Source: Hydrolagus colliei
Taxonomy: Eukaryota
Direction: 5' to 3'
Assembly: GCA_035084275.1 (NCBI GenBank)
Contig: CM068742.1
Span: forward strand, 154,752,001-154,816,000
Length of the DNA stretch: 64,000 nucleotides
This document shows, piece after piece, positions 4,376-64,000 of this stretch. The position numbers were made by a program, and so were the translations under genes. Position 1 is the first letter of the stretch; every line of letters begins with the position of its first letter. Under the pieces are notes generated by a model, which worked only from the letters and a program-made list of their open reading frames with translations, ran no database searches and was not told the DNA's origin.

Positions 4376-4815
4376 TAGGTCTTCAAGATCATGAAAGGTT
4401 GCGACAGCTAGGTAGGGAAAAGCTGTTTCCGCTGGTAGGTGTGTCTGTGACCCGTGGTCACAGTCTTAAGGTATCTAGCAAAAGAAGCAGAGGGGAGGTT
4501 AGAAGAAATTTTTTTACTCAGCGTGTTGTTCGAATTTGGAATGATCTGCCTGAAAGGGAAGTGAGATCCGATTCGATAGCAGCTTTTGAGAGAGAACTAG
4601 ATAGGTATCTGGGGAAGATGGGTTTGCAGGGTTATGGGGAGAAAGCTGGTGATTGGGGTTAATGATAGCCAGCGCCTTGGGACTTCCTCCCGACGTGAAA
4701 GGCGCTCTATAAATGTAAATTGTTGTTATTTGTTGTTGTTGCTCGGTCACAGAGCTGGCACAGACTCGATGGGCCGAATGGCCTCCTTCTGTGCCGGAAC
4801 ATTCTATGATTCTAT
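4376..4815 (+). mobile_element. Additional CR1 3' fragments with an L2-type tail between them
   Basis: REKLFPLVG..RNFFTQRV..WN frame in ORF 4324-4662; CR1 tail at ~4800. Confidence 0.85.
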
Positions 4816-6252: not shown

Positions 6253-6636
6253 GTCATAAAAAGAAGCTCTCATCAGTGACTGGTACCAAGGGAGGTGATG
6301 CCACACTGCCCTGCTCCTTCACCAGGCCCAACACACACCAGAATCGTGCCACAGTCACAGTGATTTGGAGGAGAGGGAGGCCACAAGGGCAGCCAGTTTC
6401 TAATGACACTCTTGACCTCACCTCCCGCTCCAAACCCAGGGAGTCAGAGACAGTGAATGAAGGAAATCGCTATAACCTGGTTGGGAATGTGAGGGATGGA
6501 GACGCTTCCCTGAGGATCAGGGACCTGGAGTTAAACGACACCGACCAGTATTTCTGTCATGTACACGTCATGTTTATCAATAGCGGAGAACAACAAGATC
6601 ATGTGACACAGGACATGTCACAGCTGCTGGTTGTTG
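6253..6636 (+). CDS. SIGLEC15-like: Gene A exon: Ig V-set domain, Siglec-15-like, lacking the sialic-acid-binding Arg
   Basis: Acceptor ttcctgtctcAG|GT and donor G|GTAAGA; 384 nt, phase 1-1. Encodes TLPCSFTRP..VIWRRG..RYNLVGNVRDGDASLRIRDLELNDTDQYFCHVH, which matches the Siglec-15 V pattern (LPCTFTHP, GNPRRNDLSLR, YFCRVE) with R->H. Confidence 0.92.
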
Positions 6637-7229
6637 GTAAGAAATCTCTTGTCTCTGTGGGACATGGAAAGGGGTAAATGTCAATGTTCACGGGCGCATC
6701 ATTTCAGACTAGGTTTGTCTCATTCCTTACCCTGTGCCTCACGTGTTAATTAGCAAAAGAAACATGTTATGAAATAACGGAACCTGTTACTGGGGGAGGG
6801 TTTCATCCTACGTCTCCCATTAACGCTGCAGCCAAAGTTAGGGTGATCCTAGCTGGACAAGCAGCCGGTATCATGCAATGTGGTTTTTCAGAAGATCACA
6901 GGATTGGTCTGAATGAAGAAAGCCCATCCAATCTTATCCTTACGGAACTTCCCCAATTGCTCCCTACTCCCTACCAACCCCTCACCCCTCACCTTGGTAC
7001 ATTGGTATCAAGCGGAGTATAAAAATCTGTAATTGCACTCACTGAAAGCAAATTGGCTAGATAGGTAAAAAGGAAACACTTTCAGTGCTGTGGGGTAAGA
7101 GCGGGGTAGGGGGAGTAGTTGGTAACTGAGTGGATCCTGTAGGTTGAAGCACTTGGCTTGCAAGTCAGAGGACCTGGATTCAATTTTGGGGCAGGAAAAG
7201 CATTGGGCAACCTTCTTTACTCCACACTC

Positions 7230-7825
7230 CTCCATTTTCCCAGCAATGAGTATGAATCATTGTAAAAGGTTTAGAGTACAAGAGAAGGGAATTCTTGCTG
7301 CAACTGTATAGGGCCTTGGTGAGACTTCACCTAGAGTATTGTATGCAGTTTTGGTCTCCTTATTTAATAAAGGACATACTTGCCTTAGAGGGGGGGGGGC
7401 AGTGTAGATTCATTAGGTTAGTTCCTGGGATGAGGGGACTAAACTATGAAGATAGGTTGAATAAACTAGGGCTGTATTCTCTAGAGTAAGAAGAATTAGG
7501 GGAGATTTGTTTTGAAGCATGTAACATTCTCAAAGGGCTGGATAAAGTAGACACCAAGGGATTGTTTCCCTGGTAGGAGAATCTATAACCAGGGTTCATA
7601 ATCTTCAAATTAAGGGTCAGCCTTTTAGAACAGAGTTGAGGAAACATTTCTTCACTCAGAGGGTAGTGAATTTATGGAATTCACTACCCCAGAAGGCTGT
7701 AGATGCCCAGTCCTTAAACATTTTCAAGGCTGAGACTGATAGATTTTTTTTAAAAGAAACAGATTTGGGGATATGGGAATGGGGCAGGTGATTAGAGTTG
7801 GGTGAGAAGATCAGCCATGAGATAT
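7230..7825 (+). mobile_element. CR1 3' fragment (older subfamily)
   Basis: [21 protein letters not shown]..; frameshifted. Confidence 0.85.
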
Positions 7826-8218
7826 CTAGAAGATGTGAAAAGCATTATATTAAATGCAATTATTATTATTATTATTATTAGTGGTAGTAAATGCAAGGAT
7901 GATTACATATTATAGCTCTTTCAAAGAGCCAGAACAGAGATGATGGGCAGAATCGCCTTCTTCCTGCTATAAGATTCTGTGATATTAAAAAGGAATTATT
8001 AAGTATTTGAAGAGGAACATTATAAACAAAATTAAGATGTACAAGAAAAAAAGCAGGCAATTGGATTAAAGTAGAAAAACAACAACAAAATTACATTTGT
8101 ATAATGTCTTTCACGTTGGGAGGACATCCCAAGAACACCTTTGAGTAAGTAAGTACCAGCAGATATGACAGTGAAAGTTATTTAATTAGAATAACTCTGT
8201 GTTTCTTTATACCCAAAG

Positions 8219-8659
8219 CTCCGGCCATCATTGTTAATCTGTCCCTCGTGGCCGGTGATGGAGCCGGAGGTGGCATCGTGTGCACGGCTGAGGGGGAACC
8301 GCTGGCCACCATCACATGGATCGACCCCCAGAATAACACGCTGCCCGTCAACACCCACACGTCAATCACACATATACCAGACACACATCTAACCGTGGGG
8401 GAGATCTGGGGCCTGAGGCTGAGGGGAACTTACCGCTGTGTAGCTGAGAACACACAGGGCAGTGACACACAAGACATCCTCATCACTGCCTTACAGAGTG
8501 TTGGGGACAAGGAGAGTGATGGGGACAGGGAGAGTGATGGGGACAGGGAGAATGGTGGAGATAAGGAGAGTGGTGGAGACAATACAGTATGTATCGTAGT
8601 CTCCACTGTGGTGCTGCTCGTTCTGCTGACTGCCTTAATTATCTGGTGGGTAAAGAGAG
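8219..8659 (+). CDS. SIGLEC15-like: Gene A exon: Ig C2-type domain, repeat-extended stalk and uncharged TM
   Basis: Acceptor tttctttatacccaaAG|CT and donor G|GTAGGT; 441 nt, phase 1-1. Encodes APAIIVNLS..CTAEGEPLATITW..YRCVAENTQG (Siglec-15: APRIVNIS..CTAEGEPPPALAW..YTCTAANSLG); TM VCIVVSTVVLLVLLTALIIWWV followed by KR. Confidence 0.92.
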
Positions 8660-8755
8660 GTAGGTGTTTACAACAATAACAACAAAATTACATCTGTATA
8701 GTGCCTTTCACGTCAGGAGGATATCCCAATGCACTGACAGATATAGTGATTTTGT

Positions 8756-9040
8756 GGAGTCCTGTAGCTCAGTGGTTTCTGAGTACTCGACTTACAAGTG
8801 TAAGAACTGCGTGTGATTCCAGGCAGGATGAAACCTTTGTCAAGTTTCCTTATTCCACTCGCCTGATAATACCTTAAAAAATCAATAATCAATTGGTCAT
8901 TTCAATCCATGACTGTTTGTGGGATACTGCTATGTGCAATTAGCTGCCACATTTAGCCCACAAATATACAGTCAATTCACTTTACAGTATATTATTTGAA
9001 GCACTTTGAGACTTCTAGAAGATATGAGAAGTGCTATTTG
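8756..9040 (+). mobile_element. tRNA-derived SINE
   Basis: Head tcctgtagctcagtgg (A box) with degenerate B box; body gtcatttcaatccatgactgtttgtggg..; L2-like tail. Confidence 0.8.
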
Positions 9041-9044
9041 AGGA

Positions 9045-10335
9045 TATTTCGAGTAAACTAGATAGGGGTGAATCAGTGGATGTTGTCTATTTGGACATCC
9101 AGAAGGCATTCGATATGGTGCCGCATTAAAGGTTGATCCATAAGATAGGGGCTTACAGAATTGGGGGAAAATATTAACATGGATTAGGTAATAGTTAATA
9201 GGTAGGAAACAAAGAGCAGGGATAAACAGGTCTTTCTCAGATAGGCGGGATGTGACTAGTGGAGTGCCACAAGGATCAGTTCTTGGACCTCAGCTATTTA
9301 CCATCTACATCAATGATCTAGATAAGGACATTGAGCTTAATATATCTAAATTTGCTGATGATACGAAACTAGGAGGAAGCATTAATACCAAGGATGATAT
9401 TTTAAAAATGCAGCGCGATATAGATAGGTTAGGTGAGTGAGAAGGTAGGTGGCAGATGCAGTATAATGTAGGGAAGTGCAAGGTCATTCACCTAGGTAGC
9501 AAAAACATCAACAACAACAATAACTTCAATTTATATAGCGCCCTCCACACCGGACGGTGTCTCAGAGTGCTTCGCATCAGAGCAGGTTATTCTTTAGAGG
9601 GGGAGAGATTGGAAACTGTTAGCATGTCGAGGGACTTGGGTGTCCTTGAACACCAAAACCAAAAGTTAATATGCAGGTGCAGCAGGCAATTAGGAAAGCT
9701 AACGGTATGTTAGCTTTCATTATGAAAGGGTTAGAGTATAAGAGTAGGGAAGTCTTGCTGCAGCTGTATAGGGCCCTGATGAGACCACACCTGGAATACT
9801 GTGTGAAGTTTTGGTCTCCTTATTTAAGAAAGGATGTACTTGCCTTGGAGGGAAGTACGTTGGTTGTAGCGTAGGTTTACTAGGTTAGTACCTGGAATGA
9901 GGGGCATGAGTTATGATGATAAGTTGATTAATTTGGGCCCATATTCTCTGGCATATAGAAGAATTAGAGGGGATCTTATGGAAACCTATAAGATTATTGA
10001 GGGGCACGACAAAGTAGATAGTGTTTCCCCTGCTTGGAGAATCTAAAACCAGGGGTCACAGTCTTAAAGTTAGAAAAAGCCCTTTCACACTGAGTTGAGA
10101 AAAAACTTCTTCACTCAGGGTGGTGAATGTATGGAATTCTTTACCCCAAAGGGCTGTTGATGCTCAGTCCTTGAACATATTCAAGACCAAGTTGATTAGA
10201 TTTCTCATTTATAAGGGATTAAGGGGTATGGGGATAAGGCAGGTAGCTGGAGTTAGAGTAGAATATCAGCCATGATTGAATGGCGGGGCAGGCTCGAGGG
10301 GCCGAATGGTCTACTCCTGCTCCTATTTCTTATGC
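9045..10335 (+). mobile_element. Degenerate CR1 RT/3' region with a short L2-tail insert (~9505-9580)
   Basis: VPQGSVLGPQLF..FADDTKL and RPHLEYCVKFWSP in broken frames. Confidence 0.9.
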
Positions 10336-10699
10336 TATCTCAAATGCAAGGATTATTATTATTATTATTCCAAGTGAGTCCAGTTTAGCCACTCGCATTC
10401 TCACCTCTGACTCAGCAAATATTCTGCCATATACACACACTGGGTAACCATACAATAATAATAAGCAGAAGGAGAAGAAGAAAAATTATTGTGTTTGATA
10501 TTGCCAGCCGGTGGTTTCCTGGCTTCCTGCTTTAGTAACCATAGTTTCACCACACAATAGGAAGCAAAAACTTTGCCACAAGTCTTTCACTAGAATAACA
10601 TACACACTTACCAAACCAGCGAACCATCTAAAGCAATATCAAATGAAATAATTATTATTAGGATTATTATTATCTCTCACCTTTCTTTGGTCTCTTCAG

Positions 10700-10730
10700 G
10701 TGTTGGAGTTTCCCGCCAGCATTCAGAGAG
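10700..10730 (+). CDS. Gene A cytoplasmic exon 1 (GVGVSRQHSE)
   Basis: ctttggtctcttcAG acceptor, GTGAGT donor; 31 nt, phase 1-2. Same-length paralog at 54421-54451 (-). Confidence 0.85.
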
Positions 10731-11621
10731 GTGAGTGTGTCTTTCTAATGCTTTTACTTTTCCATTGACATTCAAGTTGCAAATGGCTGTTGTCCGGCAA
10801 GCTTCCTGCTTCTCTCTCCAGCTATGACCACCCTACCCATTGGGGCTTTGGCTTGTAGGGTTAACAGGAAATGAGTGGGAGGATTCCCAGGCCCCAGTGG
10901 CCGGTCAGTCCTTCCAATTCTCGCCGATGAGCAATCTGTCAACTGCAGTGCACTTGAATACCGGATACTCACCTGGCTCAGGACCCGGACTGGAGACCCA
11001 CAGACTGTGGGCTTGATTGCAACATTCTGTTTCCAACAGCCAGTGAAGCCCACGGAAACACTGTGATACTTGAACCACCCCCCACTGCCCCACCATCCAA
11101 ATAACAACTTGTGTCTCCTCCGTGGGGATAAAGCAGGATTTCTAGAGCCAGCTCATTGCTGAGCTGGCTCTAGGGCAACATTATTCGCAACAGAATTTTA
11201 TTTCATTTGAGATGTATTTATTTCATTTGAGATGTATTTCACGACACCTGGAACTCTCAGTTAAAACACTTCGCACTCGCTCCTGCCATTTCAAAACCCA
11301 GCTAAATCCTTATGAGACTGAGCAGTTTCTCACTCAACGTGGACTCCTGCCCCTTCTCTCTGAAGTGATTGGGAAAGATCTCTGATACGAAAGACACTGT
11401 ATAAGTGCAAGCGGCTGTTCTTGAATCTCCATTGCTCCTCGTCTGTAGCTTTGTATTAACCACCCTGTAATGCGTTGCCTAGAACTCCACACAATCCTGT
11501 GACCGCACTGAGGCTTGGACCCTTCAGAGAAGAGTCTTTCTCCCTATGTCCTGGCCAACAATCCCCTCAGTAAACTTGATCACTCACTTCACTTCATTCA
11601 CTTGGCTGGTGTTATTCTCAG

Positions 11622-11935
11622 TTCTGTATCTGAGTGGTTAGAGCACTCGCCTTACAAGTGTAAGGCCTATGTTCGTATCCAGGCAAGTCAGTGTGAAACC
11701 TTGGGCAAGTCTCCTTGATCTACACGCCTAAACATAAGTCCTCAAAAAGCCCCATAATAATCAAATTGGTCATTTCAATCCACGACTGTTTGTGGGGAGG
11801 CTGCTGTGCGCAATTAGCTGCCATGTTTCGCCCACAAATATACAGTTAATTGACTTTACAGTATATTCTGTGAAGCGCTTTGAGATGTCTACAACACATG
11901 AAAAGTGCAATACCAAATGCAAGGATTATTATTAA
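11622..11935 (+). mobile_element. tRNA-derived SINE
   Basis: gagtggttagagcactcgccttacaag..gttcgtatccagg head, same body as other copies, (att)n tail. Confidence 0.8.
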
Positions 11936-12083
11936 AATACACAGACACTACTACAGTAAATTATGTGAAGTGCTATAGGACGTCCTCCTGATGTGAAAGA
12001 CATGATATCAAATGTAAAGATTATTAGTTTTATCTTCCATCCTCTATAAAATGTAAAATATAGAATGTTTTCTATTTTTTTAG

Positions 12084-12145
12084 TCGTCAAATGGATTTGG
12101 TTGTTGACAACGACTTGGTTCAGTCTCAGCTGCCTACAGGAGACG
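12084..12145 (+). CDS. Gene A cytoplasmic exon 2 (SRQMDLVVDNDLVQSQLPTGD)
   Basis: ttctatttttttAG acceptor, GTAACT donor; 62 nt, phase 2-1, which restores frame. Paralog at 50939-51000 (-). Confidence 0.85.
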
Positions 12146-12602
12146 GTAACTGTTTTATCTCGATTAGCGAGGGCACAATTTTCACCCTGTACTTTCACTA
12201 ACCCAGGGCTGGTCTCAGCTTTGCTCAGTCAGTGACCCTCTCACCTCTGGCTCTGGGTGTCAGACACACACAGAAACCCATCAATGCTTCAGAGTATCTG
12301 CATCAGACTGAGAATGTAAATCACCCGCTCATCGACATTTCCATATATGGAATGGCGCACTCTCCCTCTCCATGGAGAGACTCATCCTGGTTACCACATT
12401 TCAGAGAATATTCACACACAATGACCAAGCCCTGGGGACCTCACAGTGTCCATTGAGGAAACTGCAAGAGTTTAACACCTGAAGCCACATTGCCTGCCAC
12501 ACAGCTTTCACATCCTCCCGACTTTGCATTGCTCCACATTAAACTTTGTCTGCCACATGTCTGCCCATTTTACCTGTCTGTCTACTGTTGTGTCTCTGAC
12601 AG

Positions 12603-12662
12603 ATGAAGCTGCTGTAATCTACAGCGTGGTCACTCCATCACCAGCTCGGCAAACAGGTTTAG
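12603..12662 (+). CDS. Gene A ITIM exon 1 (DEAAVIYSVVTPSPARQTGL)
   Basis: tgttgtgtctctgacAG acceptor, GTAAGT donor; 60 nt, phase 1-1. VIYSVV fits the ITIM consensus. Confidence 0.87.
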
Positions 12663-13369
12663 GTAAGTCACATGGGGACAAAGCCAGCATTGCCTCGCCT
12701 CTCAGCCGACAGGCAACTGCCTTCCCTTTGCTGGCTCACATGCCAGCACTCTAACCTCTCAGTTAACCTCTCTGGGTCCAAGTGACAAATTAGATCCTTC
12801 CACTCACAAACATCTAGTCTAACAGTGAACACACCAGGGCAGTGCTGGAGGAGAAGTACATTGGTTTGCTTAAGATGAGATTCCATATATGCCTGTTGAG
12901 GAGGATGTTAAAGATCCAGTGGCTCAATTGGAAAACACAAGGGAACTTCTCCCCGGGTGCAGATAAAATTGATCATTCATTTCATGTTTATGGGATGTTA
13001 CTGGAAGCAAATTGGCAGTCACGTTTACCAACAAATACAGTCATTAAACTTCAAGGTAGCAATGTGACAGTAGGCAGTGACATGCATTGAAATATTTTGA
13101 CACACAAAGAAATTGAAAGCCAATGAGGAAAGGGGAGTTGGACTAAAGGGAGAGTCTTTCAGAGCCTCACAGGCATCACTGGCCTCCAACTTGGCATAAA
13201 TGTTCTGCTGGTATAAACAGGGCTGTAATGAGAGGGGAGCATTAGGGTCTGTCATGGGATGGCTGAGAGGGACTTTATAGAGGCTGCTGCTGCCCAGGGA
13301 TAAGGTGGAATGTGGCAAAGGGGAAGCTGAAGAGGGATGGAAAGGTGCTGACTGTTGTGTCTCTGACAG

Positions 13370-13429
13370 ATGAAGCTGCTGTGATCTACAGCGAGGTTAC
13401 CCCAGCACTGGCCAGGCAAACAGCTTCAG
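13370..13429 (+). CDS. Gene A ITIM exon 2 (DEAAVIYSEVTPALARQTAS)
   Basis: Same acceptor context as the previous exon, GTAAGA donor; 60 nt, phase 1-1. VIYSEV is an ITIM. Confidence 0.87.
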
Positions 13430-14551
13430 GTAAGAAATGTATCACACAGGGACAGATCTGGCATTGTCTTACCTCTCAACCGACCTTCTCTCTCCTGTGC
13501 AGGGTTAACTATCATCCTGGCTCTGTTGGAAATATTCTCAGTCAGATGGTTGTGGATTCATCCCCCAAATTGGGACTTTTACACATAATCTATGTGAGGA
13601 AGTTCACATTATCGGAGGCATCGTCCAACAGACCCTGTTCAGGTGGAAGTTAAAGATCCTATGGTACAACAACAAGGAAATTACATTTGTATAGTACCTT
13701 TCACGTTGGGACATCCTCCTGATGTGAAAGCCACTACACTAGTGTAATTTTGTTGTTGTTGTTGGGAGGGCGTCTCAAGGTTTGTACTGTTAGAAAAGAG
13801 AAGGGAGTTTATCTGGGTGTCTAGATTAAATTGTTTATTTACTTCATGGCAGTTTGTGGGTCCAAATTGACTGTCGCGTTCAACAACAAAATTACTCATG
13901 TACGGCGACTTTCATGTCCAGGCGGATGTGGTGCTGGACAGTTACTGCTTCGGACGATCTGAGCACAGGGGCGTGTGGGGAAGGAGATGCCGTTGGGTCC
14001 ATCGAAGAGGAGAGTGTTGAGGCGATACCTGAAAGAGTCCAGTGAGGGGGCGAGGTGGAGGAATTTGGGGATGGCATTCCAGAGGTTGGGGTCAGAGTGA
14101 CTGAAGGCTCAACAAATACACAGTCGCAACATAATATAGTGAATCCTGTAAAATGCTATTATACATACTTTGATATGTTTTGACAATGTGATAGCCCCAC
14201 TTTGCCATGTCCCCCAAATGTGAAATGGATAATAAATTATTGTTGCTGTTGTTGTTATATGAAATGCCAGGAATAATATCCAATTGAGCATTGACCTCAG
14301 AGACATGGGGGTTGCTCACCAGCCCACAGGGCCTGGCTTGTAGTTCCAATTCCTAGTTCACTGTTCATTCCTCGAACCCTTTGACTCAGCTTTTGGGACT
14401 GAGCTTCATACTTTACCTCTCTGGAATTTATCTCTGGAATTCCATATACACAGTACATACACACTCTGTTTGATAACTAGTGTCATATTTGCTTTGTGAA
14501 GCCGATTTCCAATTGCTAATTATTTACCAACATTGTCTGTCTTTCCTTCAG

Positions 14552-17715: not shown

Positions 17716-17767
17716 GACTTCAAGAAAGTTGTTTAGTTAGAATAACTGTGTTTCTTTATACCCAAAG

Positions 17768-18137
17768 CTCCCGCTGTCCTCCTGACTCTGTCCCTCGTGG
17801 CCGGTGATGGAGCCGGAGGTGGCATCGTGTACACGGCTGAGGGGGAACTACCAGCCACCATCAGAGGGATTGATCCCCAGAATACAAGCTGCCCGTCAAC
17901 ACCAGCCACACACCAGTCACACACATACCAGACACATATCTAACTGTGGGGAAGATCTGGGACCTGACGCTGAGGGGAACTTATCGCTGTGTAGCTGAGA
18001 ACACACAGGGCAGAGACATCCTCATCACTGCCCCCCACAGAGTGATGGGGACAGAGAAAGTGATCCTGTGTCTGATATACGCAGCTAAATACCTGTTTAT
18101 GTTGGTCATGGGGATCGTTCTCATTAGAAAACTAAAG
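17768..18137 (+). pseudogene. SIGLEC15-like: Pseudogene B: Siglec-15-like C2 + Lys-containing TM exon
   Basis: Acceptor and C2 DNA are near-identical to 8219 and 56116. Lesions: B-strand Cys TGC->TAC, TW->RG, and a 1-nt deletion (aatacaagctgccc vs aataacacgctgccc) giving TAA. The downstream frame encodes TM VILCLIYAAKYLFMLVMGIVLI-RKLK, then a GTTAGT donor (phase 0). Confidence 0.85.
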
Positions 18138-19166
18138 GTTAGTTCATTACCAGAAATGAGCCCAGAGCTGGGATGGGTTCAGGGTGAGCTGAAAGATGCG
18201 GCCAACTTGGTAGCCAGATTCCTGAGCCAGGTATTCCCACCATCCTTCAGGATGATGCTTGATGCTGGATGAGCTGGTGTGGCACACCAGTTGGATTTGG
18301 AGGAACAGAAATTCAATTGTGAATTAAAAAGCTCTAATTGTTTAGGTGGATCTAATTGGACAAGCAGTTAGAAGCTTGAGACAGTTTTAGCAATGGCCAA
18401 CTATTGTAGCTAATTATACTTTAGCAAACCCAAGGGACCTTTGGAGTCCATAACCCTTGCCAATCCGCATGCCTCTCATGGTGCAAATTGTTGGAGGTGG
18501 TGTCCTTCTGATGACTTGTTAAACCAAGGTTTTCTCTGCCTCTACAGTTAGACATTAAAGATCCCATAATTTTATTGGAAAAACGAAGGAAGTTTTACTC
18601 TCCCTCTATCCTGGCCAACAATCCACTAAATAAAACAGGTCACTCATTTCCCGACTATTATTGGGACGTTGCTGTGTAAGAATTGGCTGCCGTTTTCACC
18701 CACAAAATACAGTCACTCCACTGTGAAGAGAAAATGCGCCCAGTGACCATTCCATGTATTACAACAGTTTGATTGTCACCCTCCCAATCTTAGTAATGTA
18801 CACAGTTATAATGGTGATACTATTTAACAAGTATAACATGATCACTCTGGAAATATTTCCCCAAATAGTCTCAGGATTGTTAGCTGAGCCAGATGTTCTC
18901 CTGGTTCAATTGGTAACACACATACCTCTGGGACAAAAGGTTGTGGGTTCAAAGTCCATGTTGGGAGAACGCAATAGGAGAGTAATGCTGCATTGCTGAA
19001 AAGTTACATCTTCCAAAGAGAGGTAAACCAAGGTCCCATCTATGTTTGTTTGTGGGACTTTGCAATGTGCACATCAACTGCTGTGTTTGCCTACAAATTG
19101 CTCACCACATTTTAAAATTTCAGATGAAATTCAGCCATTCAATGGTATTCTCTTTCCCCCTCACAG

Positions 19167-44385: not shown

Positions 44386-44438
44386 TCACTGCTCAGCTGA
44401 GCTCCACTTGGATTGGGCGACTTCAGCATAAACCACAT
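44386..44438 (-). CDS. Gene D terminal coding exon with ITIM (NVVYAEVAQSKWSSAEQ*)
   Basis: Acceptor ttgtttcccttctAG; VVYAEV ITIM; TGA at 44386-44388. Confidence 0.85.
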
Positions 44439-47843: not shown

Positions 47844-47903
47844 CTGAATCTGTTTGCTGGGCTGCTGCTGGGACAACCTCGCTGTAGATCACAGCAGCTT
47901 CAT
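47844..47903 (-). CDS. Gene D ITIM exon 2 (DEAAVIYSEVVPAAAQQTDS)
   Basis: 60 nt, phase 1-1, ctctgacAG/GTAAGA; VIYSEV ITIM. Confidence 0.87.
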
Positions 47904-49584: not shown

Positions 49585-49638
49585 CTGAATCTGTTTTCCA
49601 GGTCGGTACTGCCTCGCTATAGATCACAGCAGCTTCAC
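49585..49638 (-). CDS. Gene D ITIM-like exon 1 (GEAAVIYSEAVPTWKTDS)
   Basis: 54 nt, phase 1-1, ctctgacAG/GTAAGA; VIYSEA is a degenerate ITIM. Confidence 0.83.
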
Positions 49639-50938: not shown

Positions 50939-51000
50939 CATCTCCTGCAGGCAGTTGAGGTTGAACCATGTCATTGTTAACAACCGGATCCATTTGATGA
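50939..51000 (-). CDS. Gene D cytoplasmic exon 2 (SHQMDPVVNNDMVQPQLPAGD)
   Basis: 62 nt, phase 2-1, AG/GTAACT; homologous to 12084-12145. Confidence 0.85.
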
Positions 51001-54420: not shown

Positions 54421-54451
54421 CTGTCTGAATGCTGGTGGGAATCTCTGGCAC
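54421..54451 (-). CDS. Gene D cytoplasmic exon 1 (GARDSHQHSD)
   Basis: 31 nt, phase 1-2, AG/GTGAG; homologous to 10700-10730. Confidence 0.85.
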
Positions 54452-54615: not shown

Positions 54616-55500
54616 AAACAGAAGTTGCTGGGGAAACTCAGCAGGTCAGGCAGCATCTATGGAGAAAGGAAAGCGAGTCAACGTTTCGGGTCCATGACCC
54701 TTTGTCAGAACTGGGGCTTGTTTGGAGGAAGAGGTTTTTAAGGACGTTAGAGGGAGGGGGGGTGGGAGACAGTATGGAAGACAAATGAGACAAAGAAGAC
54801 AAAGATAAAAGAGTGTGTTAACTGATGGGTTGAAAATGTGATAACGATGTACGGGGGAGAAACAAAAGGGAGTGGGTTTAAACGAAACTGGGGAGAAGAG
54901 GTGTTTAGTGGTGATAGAACAAACAAAACACCAGAGAGGCAGGGGGTGTCTGGGGTTATGATTGTGATGGGGGTGGGGGGGGGGAAACTCCTATGGCCTG
55001 AAATGGCTGAAATCAATGTTGAGGCCAGACGGCTGTAGTGTCCCCAGTAGATAGATGAGGTGCTGTTCCTCAAGCTTTCGCTGTGGATCACTGGATCAGC
55101 GCAGGAGACCATGGATCGAAAGATCTGCCTCTGAATGTGAGCGCAAGTTGAAATGGAGGGAGACTGGAAGATCAGGGTTGACCTTCTGTACAGAGCAAAG
55201 ATGCTCTGCAAATCAATCAATCTCAAATCAATCTCCAATATGTGCTTAGTCTCCCCAATGTAGAGGAGACCACATTGTGAGCAGCGGATGCAATACACTA
55301 CATTGGTGGTAGTACACGTGAACCGCTGTCTCACATGGAAGCTATGTTTTGGTCCCTGGAGAGTGGAGCACCACCAGCTGCTTTCCTTCCTCTGGCACCT
55401 TCCCATGCCAGCGCAGGAGATGTAATACCTGCCCTTTCACCTCCACCCAAACCACTCTCCAGAGACCAAAACATCTCCACTCCGGTCTTCAAGATGTGAA
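54616..55500 (-). mobile_element. Penelope-like element 3' part: GIY-YIG endonuclease remnant, terminal repeat and inverted 5' piece
   Basis: RFTCTTTNVVYCIRCSQCGLLYIGET (-); GTFPCQRRRCNTCPF on + in the inverted segment; terminal repeat at 54616-54712. Confidence 0.85.
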
Positions 55501-55738
55501 TCTGGAAGATGCAATTTGTTGTTCTCATTGTTGCATGTGGAAAATGGGACCCTCTAACAACATGGTTCACAGGGTCTATGGATACTCACTGTGGAGATAT
55601 GCAGCATTATACAGTAATTGGAATTAAAGGTAAATGGAGCTCACTGCAGCAGATTATTTGCTGAGCCAGGAGTGTGAGCGTGAGCAGCTAAGATGGACGC
55701 ACTGAGAATAATTACTCCCTTTGTCTGTAAACACCTAC

Positions 55739-56116
55739 CTCTTTTTACCCACCAGATAATGAAAGCAGTCAGCAGAATGAACAGCATCGCAATGGAGACA
55801 CCAACAAATACCATACTGTATTCCATACTACCACTCTGTGTTCCAGGAGCGAGGATGTCTCGGGTGTCATTGCCCTGTATGTTCTTAGCTACACAGCGGT
55901 AAGTTCCCCTCAGCTTCAGGCCCCAGATCTTCCCCACGGTTAGATGCTTGTCTGGTACATGTGTGACTGGTGTGTGGCTGGTGTTGACGGGCAGCGTGTT
56001 ATTCTGGGGGTCGATCCATGTGATGGTGGCCAGCGGTTCCCCCTCAGCCGTGCACACGATGCCACCTCCGGCTCCATCACCGGCCACGAGGGACAGATTC
56101 AGGATGACGGCCGGAG
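55739..56116 (-). CDS. SIGLEC15-like: Gene D C2 + uncharged TM exon
   Basis: Acceptor tttctttacaaAG, donor G|GTAGGT; 378 nt, phase 1-1. Encodes CTAEGEPLATITW..YRCVAKN; TM MVFVGVSIAMLFILLTAFIIWWV-KR. Confidence 0.92.
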
Positions 56117-56789
56117 CTTTGTAAAGAAACACAGAGTTATTCTAACCAAACAACTTTTCACTTTATGTCTGTGCTGGTGTCTGCTCCCCACTGAGCTCTC
56201 TTCTCTAACCCCATTCCCTGCTCTCTCTCTCCCCTTCGTGTCTGTGCTAGTGCTCACTCTTCAGTGGAGCTCCCTATGCTAACTCCATTCTTTCCTTGTA
56301 TATGTTGATATTCTTTATAACTTTCCTCTCCAAATTCCTTTTTAATATTTCTTTATTTTAAAATCTTTTTTATTATCCTCGTCTATTTTGTGGAGTTTCT
56401 TTAGGCATTTGATAATAAGAAGCATGTAAATCTAAAATGTCTAAAACATCAACGTTTTATAAATTTGACAATCACAAGAACACAAGAGATGAAGAAAGCC
56501 CTTCAGACCATTTTATCTCAACTTTCCCCACCCCTCCACCCCACTGTATATTCTGTGAAGTGCTTTGAGACTTCTCATAGACATGATAATAATAATAATC
56601 CTTGCATTTGATATAGTGCTTCTCACATCTTCTAGATGTCACAAAGCGCTTCACAGAATACACTATAAAGTGAATTGATTGTATATTTGTGGGTGAAACA
56701 AGACAGACAATTGTGCACACTAGTTTCCCACAATCAATCATGGACTGAAATGAACAATTTATTATTATTTTCATCAGGCACTATATCAA

Positions 56790-57460
56790 ATATAATGATT
56801 ATTATTACAGGAGGAAGTTCTTCAGGGAAGATCTGAAAATGAAGAATGAGAGGGCGCCAATGGCGGAGGGATTAAGGAAGAGAGTTCCAAAGCTTTGCGG
56901 TTGAGTTGCTGAAAGTCAATGGTGGAGAGAAGAAGACAAGGAAAAAGCAGAAAGCCAGAGCCAACAGAGCAGAAGTGGGGGGTGGTGGAGTGGTGGAGCA
57001 GGTCAGAAAGGTAGAAAGGTGCCAGGCGTATAGGGATTTGTAGATAAGTGTGAAGATCTTTGAAGTCAATCTGTTCTGTGTAGGGAGTCAGTGAGGACTG
57101 ATGTGATGGGGGTCCAGTATTTATAGCAGGTGGCAGAGTTCTGAATCATTTGGAATTTGTGGATAGTGGAGCTGTGGAGACCACTCAGGATTACGGTAGA
57201 TGAGGTGGGAGGTGATGCAAGTGTAGACAAGTGCATTGGGAGTCAAGTAATGTTGACACAACCAAAGTAACTCGTGAAGAAAAGTGGTCTTAGCTAGGGA
57301 CGGGATGTGGAGTAGCAAGAACAGCTGGGTTCGAACCTGGCTGGTTCGATAACTCTTAGGAAAGGCCTGGGAGGTTGAGGAGGACAGTTGCAGCAAAGAG
57401 CATGTTAATGGGAGCCAAGGAGTATGGCTTCCATCTTATCGACTTTCAACTGTGGGAAGT
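56790..57460 (-). mobile_element. L2 3' fragment in the gene D V2-C2 intron
   Basis: DFKIFTLIYKSL..AKLWNSLP frame. Confidence 0.7.
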
Positions 57461-58340
57461 TTGTGCACAGAACTCGCTGGTTGCTGGTATCAGAAATCAC
57501 TGAAGTAAATCAGTAAGTCCCATGCCCTTTACTGACGGGAAACTAAATAATGCTCTTCTGATGGCTGTTCAGCTACTGGGATGGTAATCAATCTGTTACC
57601 ATCTGGCCGTGTGATTCAGCCTTACCTGTTTTATTGTGGTCAATGGATAGAAATGTTGAGATCATGGGATTAGATTCATGGAGTAGCCAGATATCTAACA
57701 GACAAAGAAGCCCATTGTGTTACCTGGGTCTCCATACTAAACGGTTGAGAGTTCCACCAATTTTCTATTTGAATAGTATGGTTCTGCACTGTCTCCCACT
57801 CTCTCCACCATTGACTTTCAGCAATGTCTCTTATGGGATCTCCTAGGAGGAACACCCCAAAGCTCAAGGTTTGGAGAGCCCAGATCATGCCTTGAGAAAG
57901 CTCCTGGAGTTTAACCAGGTTTAAAGAGATTCAAATAGCAAATGTAATAATCAAATGTGATTAATAAAATAATAATGAAATAATAAATGTAATAATTTAG
58001 AATACAACAGTACAATAGAACAAGAGGCACTGTAATGCCTTCATTCAAATCAATCCTGTTATCTTTTGAAGAAAACTCATTGCTTGTCATTGAAGGCACT
58101 GATCGGCAAGCTTTCGGCTGCCTGTAGAGCTGGGAGCGCCTTACACGTGAAGAATTTAACAAGAGATAAGCGGGAAGACACCCTGCCCACACTAACCAAC
58201 TAAAGTTCCTGCTGGACTATAGTGCATTTCTTATCATTAACACGTGAGGAACAGGGTAAGGAATGAGACAAATCTTGTTTGTAATGATGCGCAAGTGAAC
58301 ATTGACCTTCCATGTCCCTCAGAGACAAGAGATTTCTTAC

Positions 58341-58724
58341 CAACAACCTGCAGCCGTGACATGTCCTGTGTCACCTGGTCTTTTTGTTGTTCATCATCGA
58401 TAAACATGACGTGTACGTGACAGAAATACTGGTCGGTGTCGTTTAACTCCAGGTCCCTGATCCTCAGGGAAGCGTCTCCATCCCTCACATTCCCAACCAG
58501 GTTATAGCGATTTCCTTCATTCACTGTCTCTGACTCCCTGGGATTGGAGCGAGCGGCGAGGTCAAGAGAGTCATTAGTAACTGGCTGCCCTTGTAGCCTC
58601 CCTCTCCTCCAAATCACTGTGACTGTGGCACGATTCTGGTATGTCTGGGGCCTGGTGAAGGAGCAGGGCAGTGTGGCATCACCTCCCTTGGTACCATTCA
58701 CTGATGGGAGCTTCTCTTCATGAC
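58341..58724 (-). CDS. SIGLEC15-like: Gene D V2 exon (paralog of gene A V exon, FCHVH)
   Basis: Acceptor ttcctgtctcAG, donor G|GTAAGA; 384 nt, phase 1-1. About 20 of 128 residues differ from gene A V. Confidence 0.92.
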
Positions 58725-59403
58725 CTGAGACAGGAACAGGATTGGAATAGTGCAGAGCAGTCAGTGAGACACATACATGTTACACACTGTGAAATCCTGT
58801 ATATTGTTATCTATCTTTCATGACATCCTGTCCCACATGCCTGTGTTCCTCACTCACCCTCTCTGAGCATATGTCAGCACAGTGTCTCACACACAAACCC
58901 TAGTTTATAACAGAACGACAGCAGGTGTAATGAGGATTTTAAAGATGGTTTACTCAGATCAAGGACCCACAAAGCCTATGAACAGAATAACCAATTCACA
59001 TGGAAGATGTTCCTTGAGAAAATTCTTTCTCTTTTCCTTTTGTGTGGTAAATCAGGTGTCTGATATGCTATTAAGAGAATGTATGGCAGAGTCAGAGTTC
59101 CAAATATGTATCACTTACACCTGGAAATTTTCGTTTATTTGCAATGGAATGTGCACTCTATCCTTGTCGGGACAGAGGCTTACCTAATTCCAGAGAGTTT
59201 TATAAGCAAGTTGGTAATTGCCAAGTACTCGAGATCTCAGATTGTATATTGGGAGTAATTCCTGGAGATTAATCAGATTCAACTGCCTAGTTTATTATTG
59301 AGAATATTGTCTGGCAAATTTCCATCTCAGTCAATAGGTTTAGTAGGAGCTGAGTGGGAATATTCCTGGACTCACTGGTCTGCCACTCCAATCCTGGCAT
59401 TGA

Positions 59404-59887
59404 TTTACTAGGATGGTGCCAGGATTGAGGGACTTCAGCTATGAGGAGAGGCTAGATAGGCTAGGGTTATTCTCTCTGGAGCAGAGAAGATTGAGGGGAG
59501 ACCTAATAGAGGTTTATAAGATCATGAGGGGTTTCGACAGGGCAAATAGAGAAAAACTATTTCCACTCGTGGGTGAATCTGTGACTCGTGGTCACAGATT
59601 TAAAATAGTTTCAAGGCGCAGTAGAGGGGAGCTGAGGAGAAATTTTTTCACTCAGCGAGTTGTTCGAATCTGGAATGCATTGCCTGAAAAGGTGGTGGAG
59701 GCTGATTCGATAACAACTTTTAAAAGGGAATTAGATCTTTATTTAGGAAGAACGGGTCTATTAGGCTATGGGGAGCGGGCAGGGCAATGGGATTGAATCG
59801 CTCTTTTCAAAGAGCCGGCACAGACTAGATGGGCCGAATGGCCTCCTTTTGTGCCGTAAAATTCTATGATTCTATGATTCTATGATT
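59404..59887 (+). mobile_element. Young CR1 3' fragment
   Basis: ORF 59413-59796 differs by 2 residues from the C-terminus of ORF 2924-4291; full (attctatg) tail. Confidence 0.95.
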
Positions 59888-60229
59888 GAGCTAGACAGGT
59901 TGGTCTGTCATCAACAACAGCAACAACATTTGTAGAGTGCCTTTCACATTGGGAGGATGTCCCTGGACATGAGCAGTACACTGGAATACTACATGCCCAA
60001 CTGGCTCAGGAACCAGGCTAGAGACCACCACAGCGGGTTGACTCAATTCTGATATTCTATTGCCTGGTACTTTATACTGACAATTCACATTTGGTTGGAG
60101 GCCGGAGGTCACAGACATAGAGGCTAGCAAGGCTTTGAAAGGGCTTTGAAGGTGAGGACCAGGATCTTGAACTGTAGTCTCTGTGTTATGGGAACCTGGT
60201 GGAGTCAGGTGATGATAATAATCATAATA

Positions 60230-60545
60230 ATATTGATAATCCTTGCATTTGAATATAGCAGCTTTCACATCTTCTAGAAATCTCAATGCGCATCATAGAA
60301 TATACTGTAAAGTGAATTGACTGTATATTTTGTGGGTGAAACGTGGCAGCCATTGCGTACAGCAGTGTCCCAAAACGCAGCAGCCACAAACAGCATACCA
60401 CAAACAGTCATGGAATTAAATTACTAATTTTTTTTAGGTATTATTACTATTAGTTGTGTGCAGTAAGGATACTTGCTCAAGGTTTTGCCCTAATTGCACC
60501 CAGGCATCTCGCTTGTAAGGCGAGTGCTCCAACCACTGAGGTACG
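60230..60545 (-). mobile_element. tRNA-derived SINE
   Basis: Shared head, body and tail on the - strand. Confidence 0.75.
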
Positions 60546-61400
60546 GGACTTCACATGGACAATGGGGCGGTGATAGGGTCATGAAGTGGGAGATGACACT
60601 GCCTATGAAGGGAGAAATTGAGGTGGTTGACGAGCATGGAGTTTACATAATCAAGTATGGATACTATGAATGTGTGGATGAGTGTCTCGCCAGCCTGCAG
60701 TGTGAGACAGTTGCAGAACGGGCGATGTTGTGGAGGTGGGGAAAGGCAGAGTGGATCATGCATGAGTGTGGGGTGGAGAGGATAATTGGGGTTCAAAAAA
60801 GATGCCAAGATTCCGGACAGGCTTAGTGAGATGCAATACGCATCCATGGATGGTGATACTGCCAGCGCTTGAGGTGTGGAGACATTGATGGGAGACAATC
60901 AAGAGGGCCTCGGTGTTGTTGATGTTCAACTGTAGAAACTTTCATGCAGGACCTGATGTCTGACAGACACACTGTCAGGATAACAGTGGTCCTAGAGTTG
61001 AGGGTGGATGCAGAGAGATAGAGTTGGCTGTCATCCATATATATGTGGAAGTTGACCCCCATATAAGTAGATGATGTCACCAAGAGGGAATGGGTATTGA
61101 AGAGAAGGGACCAAGGACAGAACCCTGAGGAATGCTACAAGGTGGTGGAGGGGCTAGAAGAGAAACCATTTGTGGAGATAAAGTGCTGCCATATTGCTGG
61201 GGTGTCAGCAGCAGATGCTTATACAATGTTTTGGGTGCTTGACAGGCATGCCCTGACCACCAGGCAAGGAAGAGGTGGGAGGGGGAGGAGGACTGTACAT
61301 CAAATAAGGTCCTGTAAAGCTGCTTTCACCCGCTTGCAAGCAGGTTCCAATAGAGTCATGGAGGCTGAGGGACAGGTGGCCATCGGTGTGTTTGAAGAGG
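60546..61400 (-). mobile_element. Degenerate L2 RT remnant
   Basis: GVNFHIYMDDSQLYLS (ORF 60823-61083). Confidence 0.8.
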
Positions 61401-62034
61401 AACGGGTGCTCAAACCAGCATTTGTTCTCTTTGCTCCACCGGGTATGGCCTCCTCCATGTCCCCCGAATCCTCCGCTCCATCCTTGGCTGCCATGCTTTC
61501 AGCCACTATGCCCCGAAGAGAAGGGACCAAGGACAGAACCCTGAGGAATGCTACAAGGCTCTGCAACTCCCTTCCTCACTCCCTTCCCCTCGCCCCCTCT
61601 ATTCCCAGTTTCAGGTCCGAGCTAAAGACATTTATCTTCGACCGCACCTTTGGTCACCTTTCTACCCCTGCCCCTGGCTCGGTCCCTGGGATCCATTGTT
61701 GTGAAGTGCTCTGAGACGTCATCCAGCATGGAGGGCGCTGTAAAAATTGAAGTTGTTGTTGTTGAAAAGGTAGGATTTGTTGAGACATGAAGGTAGGGAT
61801 GAGTAAGAGTGGTAGAGGGATGGAGTTCCAGTAGTTAGCGACATAGAAACTGAAGGCTTGGCCAATGCTGTGGTGTGGAGAGGAAGGGGAATATGGAGCA
61901 AGCCAACAGCAACTGAGGTGAGTGGAGAAGTTTGGAGAGCTAAGGAGGTACTGGAATTGGATGGACTTGTAATTGACGATGGTCAATTACATCAGTAATT
62001 GGGATGCCACTCCCCAGCACCAGCCAATAGGAAA

Positions 62035-62636
62035 CTAGCTGCTGCAACTGTATAGGGCTCTGGTGACACTGCACCTAGAGTATTGTGTGCAGTTTTGGTC
62101 TCCTTATTTAAAAAAGGACATACTTGCCTTAGAGGGGGTGCAGCGTAGATTCACTAGGTTAGATTCTGGGATGAGGGGACATGACCTATGAGGATAGGTT
62201 GAATAAACTAGGGCTGTACTCTATAGAAGAATTACAGAAGAATTATGGGGGATCTTATTGAAACATATAAGATTCTTAAAGGGCTAGATAAAGTAGGCAC
62301 TGAGGAACTGTTTCCCCTGGTAGGAGAATCTATAACCAGGGGTCACAGTCTTAAAATTAAGGGTCAGCCTTTTAGAACAGAGTTGAGGAAACATTTCTTC
62401 ACTCAGAGGGCAGTGAATTTATGGAATTCACTCCCCCAGAAGGCTGTAGATGCTCAGTCCTTGAACATTTTCAAGGCTGAGACTGATCGATTTTAAAAAA
62501 ATAGAAGGATAAGGGAATATGGGGATAGGGCAGGTAATCAGAGTTAGGTGAGAAGATCAGCCATGATATTATTGAATGGTGGAGCAGGCTCGAGGGGCCG
62601 AATGGCCTACTCCTGCTCCTAATTCTTATGTTCTTA
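62035..62636 (+). mobile_element. CR1 3' fragment in the gene D V1-V2 intron
   Basis: GDLIETYKILKGLDKV..FFTQRAVNLWNSLP. Confidence 0.9.
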
Positions 62637-62766
62637 TGCTCATCATCACCTTCCTTCACTGGGAACACTCGCTTCCTATTGCCCATCCTGGGATGGGATA
62701 TGTCCCACTGACTCCGGCACCAGTGAGGATCATCACGTCTCATTCCCACTTCCCATCGTTCCTCAC

Positions 62767-63156
62767 CTGTAACATACATACGTGTTCTGGGGCCAATTTC
62801 AAACTTTCCATCCTCACCCTGGAGCTCCACACGACAGGAGAACACCTTATCATTGTCCTCTCCCCTCAGCTGGTTTATCTTTATTGTAGCGTCGTTCCTC
62901 CTCGGGTTCCCAATCACTTTGTATCGATCTCCCTCGTTTACATCAATGACATTTTGATACTTTCCCTGTGAATCTGGCCTATAGTTTGTATATTTAAAAT
63001 ACACAGGACCAGCCCAGCCTCCCTTCCACTTGATGGTGATGTTGCCTGTGTATCTGGGGTGAGGGTGAGTGAACTTGCAGTACATGATGACTGGTGACCC
63101 TAACCTGCCAGTCACTGTATCAGGGATCTCCATTGTCCAGCCATTCTCACTGATCC
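62767..63156 (-). CDS. SIGLEC15-like: Gene D V1 exon: Siglec-15-like V-set with essential Arg
   Basis: Acceptor tgtgtgtcctcacAG, donor G|GTGAGG; 390 nt, phase 1-1. Encodes WTMEIPDTV..CKFTHPHPRYTG..W..GPVYF..RYKVIGNPRRND..SCRVE, the closest match in the window to mammalian Siglec-15 motifs. Confidence 0.93.
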
Positions 63157-63295
63157 CTGTGAGGACACACATGGTGTAATGTGAACCAGAACACAATATA
63201 AAAAGCAAACAGATAACACTGAGCTTGGACAAGAGCTAGTTTTGGTCATGGCTGAGAGTAATGTGGACAGTTTTGGGATCCTCTGTAAGAACACC

Positions 63296-64000
63296 AACAA
63301 CAAATTACACTTATAAAGCGCCTTTCACGTCGGGAGGACATCCCACGGCGCTGCACAGGATGCGTGTGACCCGAGCTGGGAGGGGAGTGTACGGGAAGGG
63401 GTGAAACAAGTAGGGAGGTCGAAAAATTTGGGGTGGAACAAATGGCACGGTCGAAGAGGAAAGTCTTCAAACCGGCCTTGAAAGAGGAAAGGGAAGAAAC
63501 GAGATGGAGGGATTGGGGGATGGAATTCCATAAAATCGGAGCAGAAAAACTGAAGGCCCGGCCTCTGATGGTGGGGCGGTTCGGGCGGGGGGCTTGGAGC
63601 AGGCCAAGTCCTGCTGAACGGAGGGTCCGGGTGGGCTTGTAGGGGGAGAGTAGATTGGTTAAGTAGGGCGGGGCAAGGCCATGTAAGGCCTTGAAGGTGA
63701 GGACGAAGATCTTGAACTCGATCCTCTGGAGGATGGGGAGCCAGTGGAGACGGGCGAGGGTGGGGCTATATGGTCGCGGAGGAGGGTGCGGGATAGTACA
63801 TGGGCTGCAGAGTTTTGGATGACCTGCAGCCTGTGAATGGAGCAACTGGGGAGGCCGACGAGGAGAGAATTTCCGTAGTCCAGCCTAGAGGTGATGTATG
63901 CGTGCACGAGTGTTTCGGCAGCGTGGGGTGTAAGATAGTTGCGGAGCCTGGCAATGTTGCGAAGTGTAAATGGTGGGATATAAAAGAAGGATATAAAGTT
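63296..64000 (-). mobile_element. L2 3' region (runs off the window)
   Basis: ITSRLDYGNSLL..LHWLPILQRIEFKI..APILWNSIP; tail tgttggtgttc. Confidence 0.9.

Follow-up and report, generated by a model that had tools for sequence, protein, structure and literature searches.

The stretch of DNA analyzed here, hereafter the window, comprises 64,000 nucleotides of Hydrolagus colliei (assembly GCA_035084275.1, contig CM068742.1, positions 154,752,001 to 154,816,000) and carries several genes related to Siglec-15. One of these, termed gene D and located on the minus strand, contains two V-set immunoglobulin (Ig) exons, V1 and V2, followed by an exon encoding a C2-set Ig domain, a short stalk and the transmembrane (TM) segment, and by five small cytoplasmic exons. 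An earlier note on this DNA had proposed that V1, which has the arginine of Siglec V domains, is spliced to the arginine-less V2 in a receptor ordered leader-V1-V2-C2-TM and ending in immunoreceptor tyrosine-based inhibitory motifs (ITIMs), a layout presented as new for the Siglec-15 clade. The features of gene D and of its neighbors are collected in Table 1.

Table 1. Features mapped in the window. LINE and SINE, long and short interspersed nuclear element; bp, base pairs; nt, nucleotides.
Feature	Positions	Strand	Remarks
Gene D, interspersed repeat, rest of window upstream of V1	63292-64000	-	numerous non-collinear copies, both within the window and at Callorhinchus locus L001
Gene D, 3' end of leader-V1 intron	63157-63291	-	about 90% identical to both Callorhinchus units
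Gene D, V1 exon	62767-63156	-	V-set Ig, 390 nt, phase 1-1, 129 full codons
Gene D, V1-V2 intron	58725-62766	-	4,042 bp; flanks 62647-62766 and 58725-58972 orthologous to Callorhinchus intron flanks
LINE 3' fragments in V1-V2 intron	59402-59882; 62040-62638		repeat copies
Further repeat in V1-V2 intron	60721-61185		repeat copies
SINE-like high-copy element in V1-V2 intron	60215-60555		at least 28 copies
Gene D, V2 exon	58341-58724	-	V-set Ig, 384 nt, phase 1-1, 127 full codons
Gene D, C2 Ig domain, short stalk and TM in one exon	55739-56116	-	phase 1-1; TM segment MVFVGVSIAMLFILLTAFIIWWV
Gene D, cytoplasmic exon 1	54421-54451	-	31 nt
Gene D, cytoplasmic exon 2	50939-51000	-	62 nt
Gene D, cytoplasmic exon	49585-49638	-	degenerate ITIM VIYSEA
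Gene D, cytoplasmic exon	47844-47903	-	canonical ITIM VIYSEV
Gene D, last coding exon	44386-44438	-	ITIM VVYAEV and stop; colinear with C-terminus ...VIYAVVTKSKGRSAEQ of homologue P0002
Middle gene, leader	34523-34475	-	MTALCLILVALIICST; de novo scan, donor score 6.1, strong and convincing candidate
Middle gene, V exon	28065-27676	-	Arg (YFCRVEI)
Middle gene, C2+TM exon	~25534-25150	-	no TM Lys
Isolated C2+TM exon, activating type	17767-18143	+	TM Lys (...KVILCLIYAAKYLFMLVMGIVLI...), frameshift, Ig Cys to Tyr
Gene A, V2-type exon	6253-6635	+	84% amino acid identity to gene D V2; His after Cys
Gene A, C2+TM exon	~8218-8658	+	acidic stalk repeat GDKESDGDRESDGDRENGGDKESGGD
Gene A, ITIM exons	12599-12655; 13366-13443	+	

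In both V exons of gene D, the first two bases and the last one belong to split codons. The exons are bordered by the acceptor cctcacag/GG and donor ACAG/gtgagg for V1 and by tgtctcag/GT and GTTG/gtaaga for V2; their positions and phase are those given in the earlier note. Both pass the Pfam V-set cut-off of 26 bits (V1 at 27.9 and V2 at 56.5 bits), and the V-set domain that Siglecs carry at their N-terminus is present according to these scores and to the AlphaFold2 fold described below. V1 starts with ISENGWTMEIP, which includes the G-W-T-M strand, and has 25 residues before its first cysteine at residue 26, whereas V2 starts with HEEKLPSV, lacks G-W-T-M and has only 19 residues before its first cysteine at residue 20, in agreement with the missing strand and the six-residue shortening reported earlier. 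The cysteines of strands B and F are present in both; each V domain has only these two cysteines and thus no pair equivalent to C95/C104. At the position after the F-strand cysteine, which aligns with R143 of human Siglec-15 (PDB 7ZOZ), V1 has an Arg (SCRVEL) whereas V2 has a His (FCHVHV). The essential strand F arginine of the Siglecs is therefore found in V1 and not in V2, as the earlier note had read it.

When the eight exons are joined, a single open frame of 469 codons is obtained that runs to a TGA codon, with AG/GT sites and compatible phases throughout. It encodes, in this order, V1, V2, C2, a short stalk, a TM segment devoid of charged residues and a tail with the motifs VIYSEA, VIYSEV and VVYAEV, the last two of which conform to the ITIM definition [I/V/L/S]-x-Y-x-x-[L/V] (PMC7226832). 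The C2 exon scores just under the cut-off of the Pfam Ig_3 and I-set profiles, is recognized by a C2 profile with an expectation value (E) of 1.7e-46 and aligns to the C2 domain of Siglec-15. The joined frame is colinear with, and over 495 alignment columns 70% identical to, a predicted Callorhinchus protein (XP_007907103, A0A4W3HWP9), of which it covers residue 19 to the C-terminus. A structural model of V1-V2-C2 had been suggested by the earlier note as a check; AlphaFold2, run on the ectodomain with a 16-sequence alignment, returned three beta-sandwich Ig domains with a mean predicted local distance difference test (pLDDT) of 85.2 and a predicted template modeling score (pTM) of 0.79. A Foldseek comparison of the whole chain with the PDB retrieved only generic three-Ig proteins (IgLON, titin, NCAM) and was uninformative as to the family.

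The same exon order is found in other cartilaginous fishes. Using V1, V2 and C2-TM together as a query, we retrieved 24 proteins, half of which (12) cover at least 88% of the query; these come from Callorhinchus, Heptranchias, Cetorhinus, Chiloscyllium, Pristis, Rhincodon, Heterodontus and Mustelus. The homologous models were produced by three pipelines (NCBI XP_, Ensembl/UniProt and GCC37643.1) and bear inconsistent names: Siglec-15, Siglec-12, CXADR-like or uncharacterized. At the genomic level, a Callorhinchus locus (L001) contains two complete tandem units of leader, V1, V2 and C2-TM exons, in which the V1-V2 introns measure 1.7-2.2 kilobases (kb), and the beginning of a further unit; one complete unit has a Lys in the TM segment and a short tail and the other has ITIM exons. 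The V1-V2-C2TM order recurs in the bamboo shark Chiloscyllium (locus L002), where the V1-V2 intron measures 4.4 kb. Gene D is collinear with the second Callorhinchus unit from V1 through the ITIM exons, and the window shares with Callorhinchus the sequences of the V1 acceptor, the V1 donor and the V2 acceptor; conservation extends over 130 bp of the intron preceding V1. The predicted Callorhinchus counterpart, LOC103188801 (512 amino acids), resembles gene D in its leader-V1-V2-C2-TM-ITIM layout and in the FCHVHV motif of V2; it differs by a Cys in place of the V1 Arg and by a long acidic stalk, and the identity of 70-75% marks it as another gene or species. Its neighbor LOC103174418 has a Lys in the TM segment and is of the activating type, whereas gene D is of the ITIM type; LOC103188797 and 'Siglec-15 isoform X1' (XP_007907096) are further members of that cluster, all of which are predicted and uncharacterized.

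Gene D shares with the chondrichthyan V1-V2-C2 Siglec-15-like family, as represented by predicted proteins, its colinearity, its own V1 and V2 clades, its exon order, its phases and its splice sites, and is very probably a further member of this ancient, widely predicted but uncharacterized Siglec-15-related family that expanded in cartilaginous fishes. Of the layout proposed in the earlier note, the part from V1 to the ITIMs is borne out by the open frame, the colinearity and the conserved exon order, while the leader was not found in the window. To call the layout new for the Siglec-15 clade was an overstatement, given that the public protein predictions for about ten chondrichthyan species already contain the V1-V2-C2 layout; one of these models (XP_007907103.1) dates from the first Callorhinchus annotation. 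Our literature search found no paper linking Siglec-15 with shark, cartilaginous fish or Callorhinchus, and the fish Siglec paper that it returned deals with teleosts only. The V1-V2-C2 layout thus appears to be undescribed in the searchable literature though present in public gene models.

A maximum-likelihood tree of 34 V domains was computed to place the two types. All 17 V2-position domains fall into one clade (100/100), inside which chimaera and elasmobranch sequences are separate, and the V1-position domains form a clade (90/91) located on the same side as the tetrapod Siglec-15 V domains and the V domain of the middle gene of the window. On this evidence, the V duplication is older than the split between Holocephali and Elasmobranchii. 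The residue after the F-strand cysteine is His in 15 of the 17 V2-type domains; in the 13 V1-type domains it is Arg (six), Leu (five), Trp (one) or Cys (one). Among homologues P0001-P0016, the V1 Arg is present in three of the four proteins without a TM Lys and in two of the eight that have the Lys, the other six having Leu (five) or Trp (one). This loss in the TM-Lys homologues resembles the situation of activating mammalian paired Siglecs, albeit with small numbers and without statistical significance. As compared to the second Callorhinchus unit, the ratio of nonsynonymous to synonymous substitution rates (dN/dS) is 0.50 for V1, about 1.0 for V2 and 0.79 for C2, with dS between 0.12 and 0.18, values that point to a chimaera near C. 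milii or else to a diverged paralogue. V1, whose reading frame is intact, is by this measure the most constrained Ig exon and is not decaying.

We regard it as likely that V1 and V2 belong to one intact inhibitory Siglec-15-related gene with a V-V-C2 outer part, and we infer that V1 is spliced to V2 in its transcripts. A number of observations weigh against this interpretation. The homologous proteins are all computational models, and one of the three tyrosine motifs of the tail, VIYSEA, is degenerate. The V2 dN/dS of about 1.0, obtained from short pairwise comparisons, fits a fast-evolving immune gene and is no proof of constraint. Regarding function, poor binding to the glycans examined is reported for the Siglec-15 orthologue of zebrafish (PMC7226832). 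Homology and de novo searches of the 844 bp upstream of V1 yielded no leader, so that gene D is only putatively complete. Finally, all Ig exons are in phase 1-1 and skipping of V1 or V2 therefore keeps the frame, and the RefSeq isoforms X2 of Rhincodon (whale shark; P0019, 299 amino acids) and Stegostoma (zebra shark; 289 amino acids) lack most of V1. The common phase and the X2 isoforms would suit an arrangement in which V1 and V2 are alternative cassette exons, the main proteins being leader-V1-C2 or leader-V2-C2 and the V-V-C2 form minor or absent. We nevertheless consider this improbable: the longest model in eight species and three pipelines holds both V domains, the V1 and V2 types already formed distinct clades before chimaeras and sharks split and have remained distinct, and conservation as well as strength is seen in both the V1 donor and the V2 acceptor.

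The missing leader bears on a second alternative, somewhat less probable still, according to which gene D is a copy that has been truncated or has died: either its V1 was orphaned by duplication of the cluster, or its leader or promoter was lost. The Callorhinchus leader (MMLGAVLCTLVLSASAF; about 52 nt), used both as DNA and as peptide against the whole window, gave only chance matches of 9-12 nt. In the de novo scan, leaders were defined by an ATG followed by a hydrophobic core and a phase-1 GT, with a donor threshold relaxed for the weak leader donors of Callorhinchus; the scan recovers the Callorhinchus and Chiloscyllium leaders and has a background of 0.8 candidates per kb per strand. Two candidates near V1 were rejected. 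The signal-peptide-like open reading frame MTKTSSCPSSVLSVCFLYCVLVHITP (63249-63171) is out of frame with V1 and would leave an intron of 14 nt; Callorhinchus has GTG in place of its ATG at 63249, and the frame is disrupted by a 1-nt indel. An in-frame read-through into V1 detected by tblastn, SVICLLFILCSGSHYTMCVLTG, has no ATG before its hydrophobic stretch and a 1-nt indel in Callorhinchus. In favor of a dead copy, debris exists elsewhere in the cluster in the form of the frameshifted C2+TM(Lys) exon, and the inverted duplicate gene A has no V1 within 6.2 kb upstream. Against it, none of the eight exons of gene D is interrupted, the splice sites are good and the frame ends at a proper stop, and V1 has a dN/dS of 0.5 and keeps its Cys, Trp and Arg. 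Moreover, because the leader-V1 introns of Callorhinchus measure 0.85-1.2 kb and this intron contains a repeat of at least 0.68 kb in gene D, the leader of gene D is expected just beyond position 64000, with a length of about 50 nt and a phase-1 donor.

The region separating V1 from V2 was searched in the same way. About 74% of this intron occurs in other copies and 54% in at least three copies, when the window and three further loci are compared, which bears out the repeat debris described in the earlier note. No further Ig exon was detected in 58725-62766 by tblastn with V1, V2 and three full-length homologues, and in an unfiltered six-frame scan of 55000-64000 with hidden Markov model (HMM) profiles for V and C2 domains only the V1, V2 and C2 exons scored, everything else having E > 0.1. 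Rfam gave no match in 58000-64000 and a tandem-repeat search of 55500-64000 nothing relevant. The sole de novo leader candidate of the intron, with two nested ATGs (60411-60306), lies inside the repeat present in at least 28 copies and was discarded; no conserved or homologous leader candidate was found in the same intron of the two Callorhinchus units and of Chiloscyllium. The absence of a C2 or leader exon noted earlier is accordingly upheld by tblastn, HMM scan and leader searches. The earlier note had also named a leader for V2 within 58725-62766 as the observation that would overturn its proposal, and no credible one was seen by homology or de novo scan. There is no in-frame ATG between the stop codon at 58782-58780 and V2, so that V2 of gene D cannot be translated from its own upstream flank. 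It is thus very improbable that the 4-kb gap hides a leader from which V2 is transcribed as a separate unit, V1 being part of another gene: the Ensembl V2-first models of Callorhinchus (P0006, P0008, P0011), which begin at an intronic ATG just upstream of V2 (MYSVTLTALHYS...), speak for it, but this ATG is out of frame in gene D (58777-58725) with a stop 56 nt upstream of V2, the conserved sequence upstream of V2 extends over only about 250 bp without a candidate exon, and these models are probably prediction artefacts. The same ATG is in frame in gene A (6198-6254).

The LINE fragments of the intron have relatives elsewhere in the window. A LINE reverse transcriptase open reading frame of 456 amino acids lies at 2921-4288 on the plus strand (Pfam RVT_1, E 2.8e-35) and is related to them; the 3' fragments are 97.5-99% identical to one another (59530-59887 versus 2149-1792, and 59402-59882 versus 3897-4377), one of them sitting within the V1-V2 intron in antisense to gene D. 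This LINE family is a recently active one. A second type of repeat, a minisatellite of about 73 bp per unit, is located directly upstream of the C2 exon in Callorhinchus (L001, 11564-12123 and 24446-24794); the window has only about 1.7 units (56290-56166), and some Ensembl models read into the Callorhinchus array (…HQHRHDGERAGNGVR…).

Variants of the layout were also encountered. The models P0003 (Heptranchias, 632 amino acids) and P0005 (Amblyraja, 596 amino acids) show V1-V2-V2-C2 and V1-V2-V2-V2-C2 orders; either the V2-type exon has multiplied further in some elasmobranchs, or the predictor has fused tandem genes. When V2 by itself was searched against the whole library, 332 proteins matched at E <= 0.001, including a partial V-V model from gar and a related elasmobranch subfamily ordered V(Arg)-V(Leu)-TM-ITIM without a C2 domain, seen in P0061 (Leucoraja), P0062 (Mustelus) and P0052 (Heptranchias). 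Also among these matches, and outside cartilaginous fishes, the predicted 'Siglec-15 isoform X2' of Protopterus annectens (XP_043934105.1, 425 amino acids) is arranged as leader-V-V-C2-TM. In contrast to gene D, both of its V domains are V1-like, with a W-S-M start and an Arg, and its TM segment has a Lys, for which reason the lungfish tandem looks like a separate and younger duplication. The lungfish, gar and elasmobranch V-V models indicate that tandem V domains in Siglec-15-like genes are found beyond gene D and chimaeras.

Among proteins of known structure, the best match is human Siglec-15 (7ZOZ) for V1 (E 8.7e-18), V2 (E 3.9e-11) and V2-C2 (E 1.8e-20), its lead amounting to 3-12 orders of magnitude in E-value. 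With V1 on the Siglec-15 side of the 100/100 split of the tree, gene D is closest to Siglec-15 among the Siglecs, as a relative and not necessarily as a strict orthologue. The ectodomain of Siglec-15 comprises one V-set and one C2-set domain, with V-site contacts W44, Y87, R143 and Y154-E155 and disulfides C64-C142 (B-F) and C95-C104 (PMC10264397). V1 of gene D has the B-F disulfide cysteines, the Arg equivalent to R143, a Trp at W44, an aromatic residue at Y87, Phe-Glu at Y154-E155 and the motifs FTHPHxxY and GNPRRND. Siglec-15 couples to DAP12/DAP10 through a TM Lys and has no ITIM (PMC7226832). Unlike Siglec-15, gene D has two V domains, an uncharged TM segment and ITIMs and lacks the C95-C104 disulfide; it therefore shows neither the single V plus single C2 domain nor the TM Lys without ITIM of the Siglec-15 orthologue group.

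The statement of the earlier note that tandem V domains are a Siglec-12 peculiarity is correct for mammalian Siglecs (PMC6288428). Like human Siglec-12, gene D has tandem N-terminal V-set domains followed by C2 and an ITIM-type tail (PMC6288428), only one of its two V domains seems fit for sialic acid, and some of its shark homologues are called 'Siglec-12' by NCBI. CD33-type V domains, however, match V1 at only E 2.3e-7 as compared to 8.7e-18 for Siglec-15, and the tandem-V layout alone is common to both. The V duplication arose independently of that of Siglec-12 and is much older in cartilaginous fishes. A further parallel is provided by the Siglec-5/-14 and Siglec-11/-16 pairs (PMC6288428), in which, as here, ITIM-tailed and TM-Lys members with near-identical outer parts occur in a cluster; those pairs are CD33-related and mammalian, whereas the present ones would be built from Siglec-15-like exons.

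Three further loci of this kind were found in the window. Gene A (6253-13443, plus strand) repeats the 3' part of gene D in inverted orientation. Its 6.2 kb of upstream sequence is filled with LINEs and contains no V1-type exon and no convincing leader; V1 and leader of gene A are either outside the window or lost. The isolated C2+TM exon on the plus strand is probably a pseudo-exon, the remnant of an activating gene of such a pair. A third gene, the middle gene (34523-25150, minus strand), has a single V domain that branches on the Siglec-15/V1 side of the tree with a long branch, and may be the closest in the window to a classical V-C2 Siglec-15-like gene.

The main mRNA of gene D would most likely consist of an off-window leader, V1, V2, the C2+TM exon and the five small cytoplasmic exons; it would encode a type I membrane protein whose outer part has the order V1-V2-C2. 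V1, at the membrane-distal tip, would be the probable sialic acid lectin domain, with the Arg and most Siglec-15 contacts kept. V2 is an ancient duplicate of this V exon, lacks the Arg, the N-terminal Trp strand and the other contacts, and is most likely a non-lectin spacer or a binder of something else. Given the uncharged TM segment and the two canonical ITIMs, inhibitory signaling via SHP-type phosphatases is predicted; for the product of gene D, we infer both sialic acid binding and ITIM signaling on sequence grounds. Sister genes in Callorhinchus and most elasmobranch homologues carry the TM Lys, so that the family looks like a paired inhibitory/activating set. Gene D would be the inhibitory partner of sister genes with the TM Lys that couples Siglec-15 to DAP12.

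Siglec-15 is usually pictured as a conserved, single-copy, V-C2, DAP12-coupled receptor 'throughout vertebrate evolution'. The present locus and its homologues show this lineage in chimaeras, sharks and rays as a family of several clustered genes, with ITIM-tailed and TM-Lys members and an extra Arg-less V domain, sometimes several. In terms of annotation, this explains the inconsistent gene names (Siglec-15, Siglec-12, CXADR-like, uncharacterized) and why the V2-first models are likely to be artefacts. The finding opens no long-standing question, the layout being already in public gene models; it is useful for understanding how Siglecs and paired immune receptors evolved and offers a natural test case for the role of a second V domain. 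A more speculative reading, less likely than not, is that cartilaginous fishes built a fast-evolving paired inhibitory/activating Siglec repertoire of V1-(V2)n-C2 receptors from Siglec-15 and not from CD33-type genes, V2 having a conserved function of its own. If true, V2, whose His has been fixed for more than 400 million years, would not be a mere spacer and could, for instance, provide another ligand site that is non-sialic or pH-sensitive, and the loss of the V1 Arg in TM-Lys members would reflect decoy or escape dynamics as in mammalian paired Siglecs.

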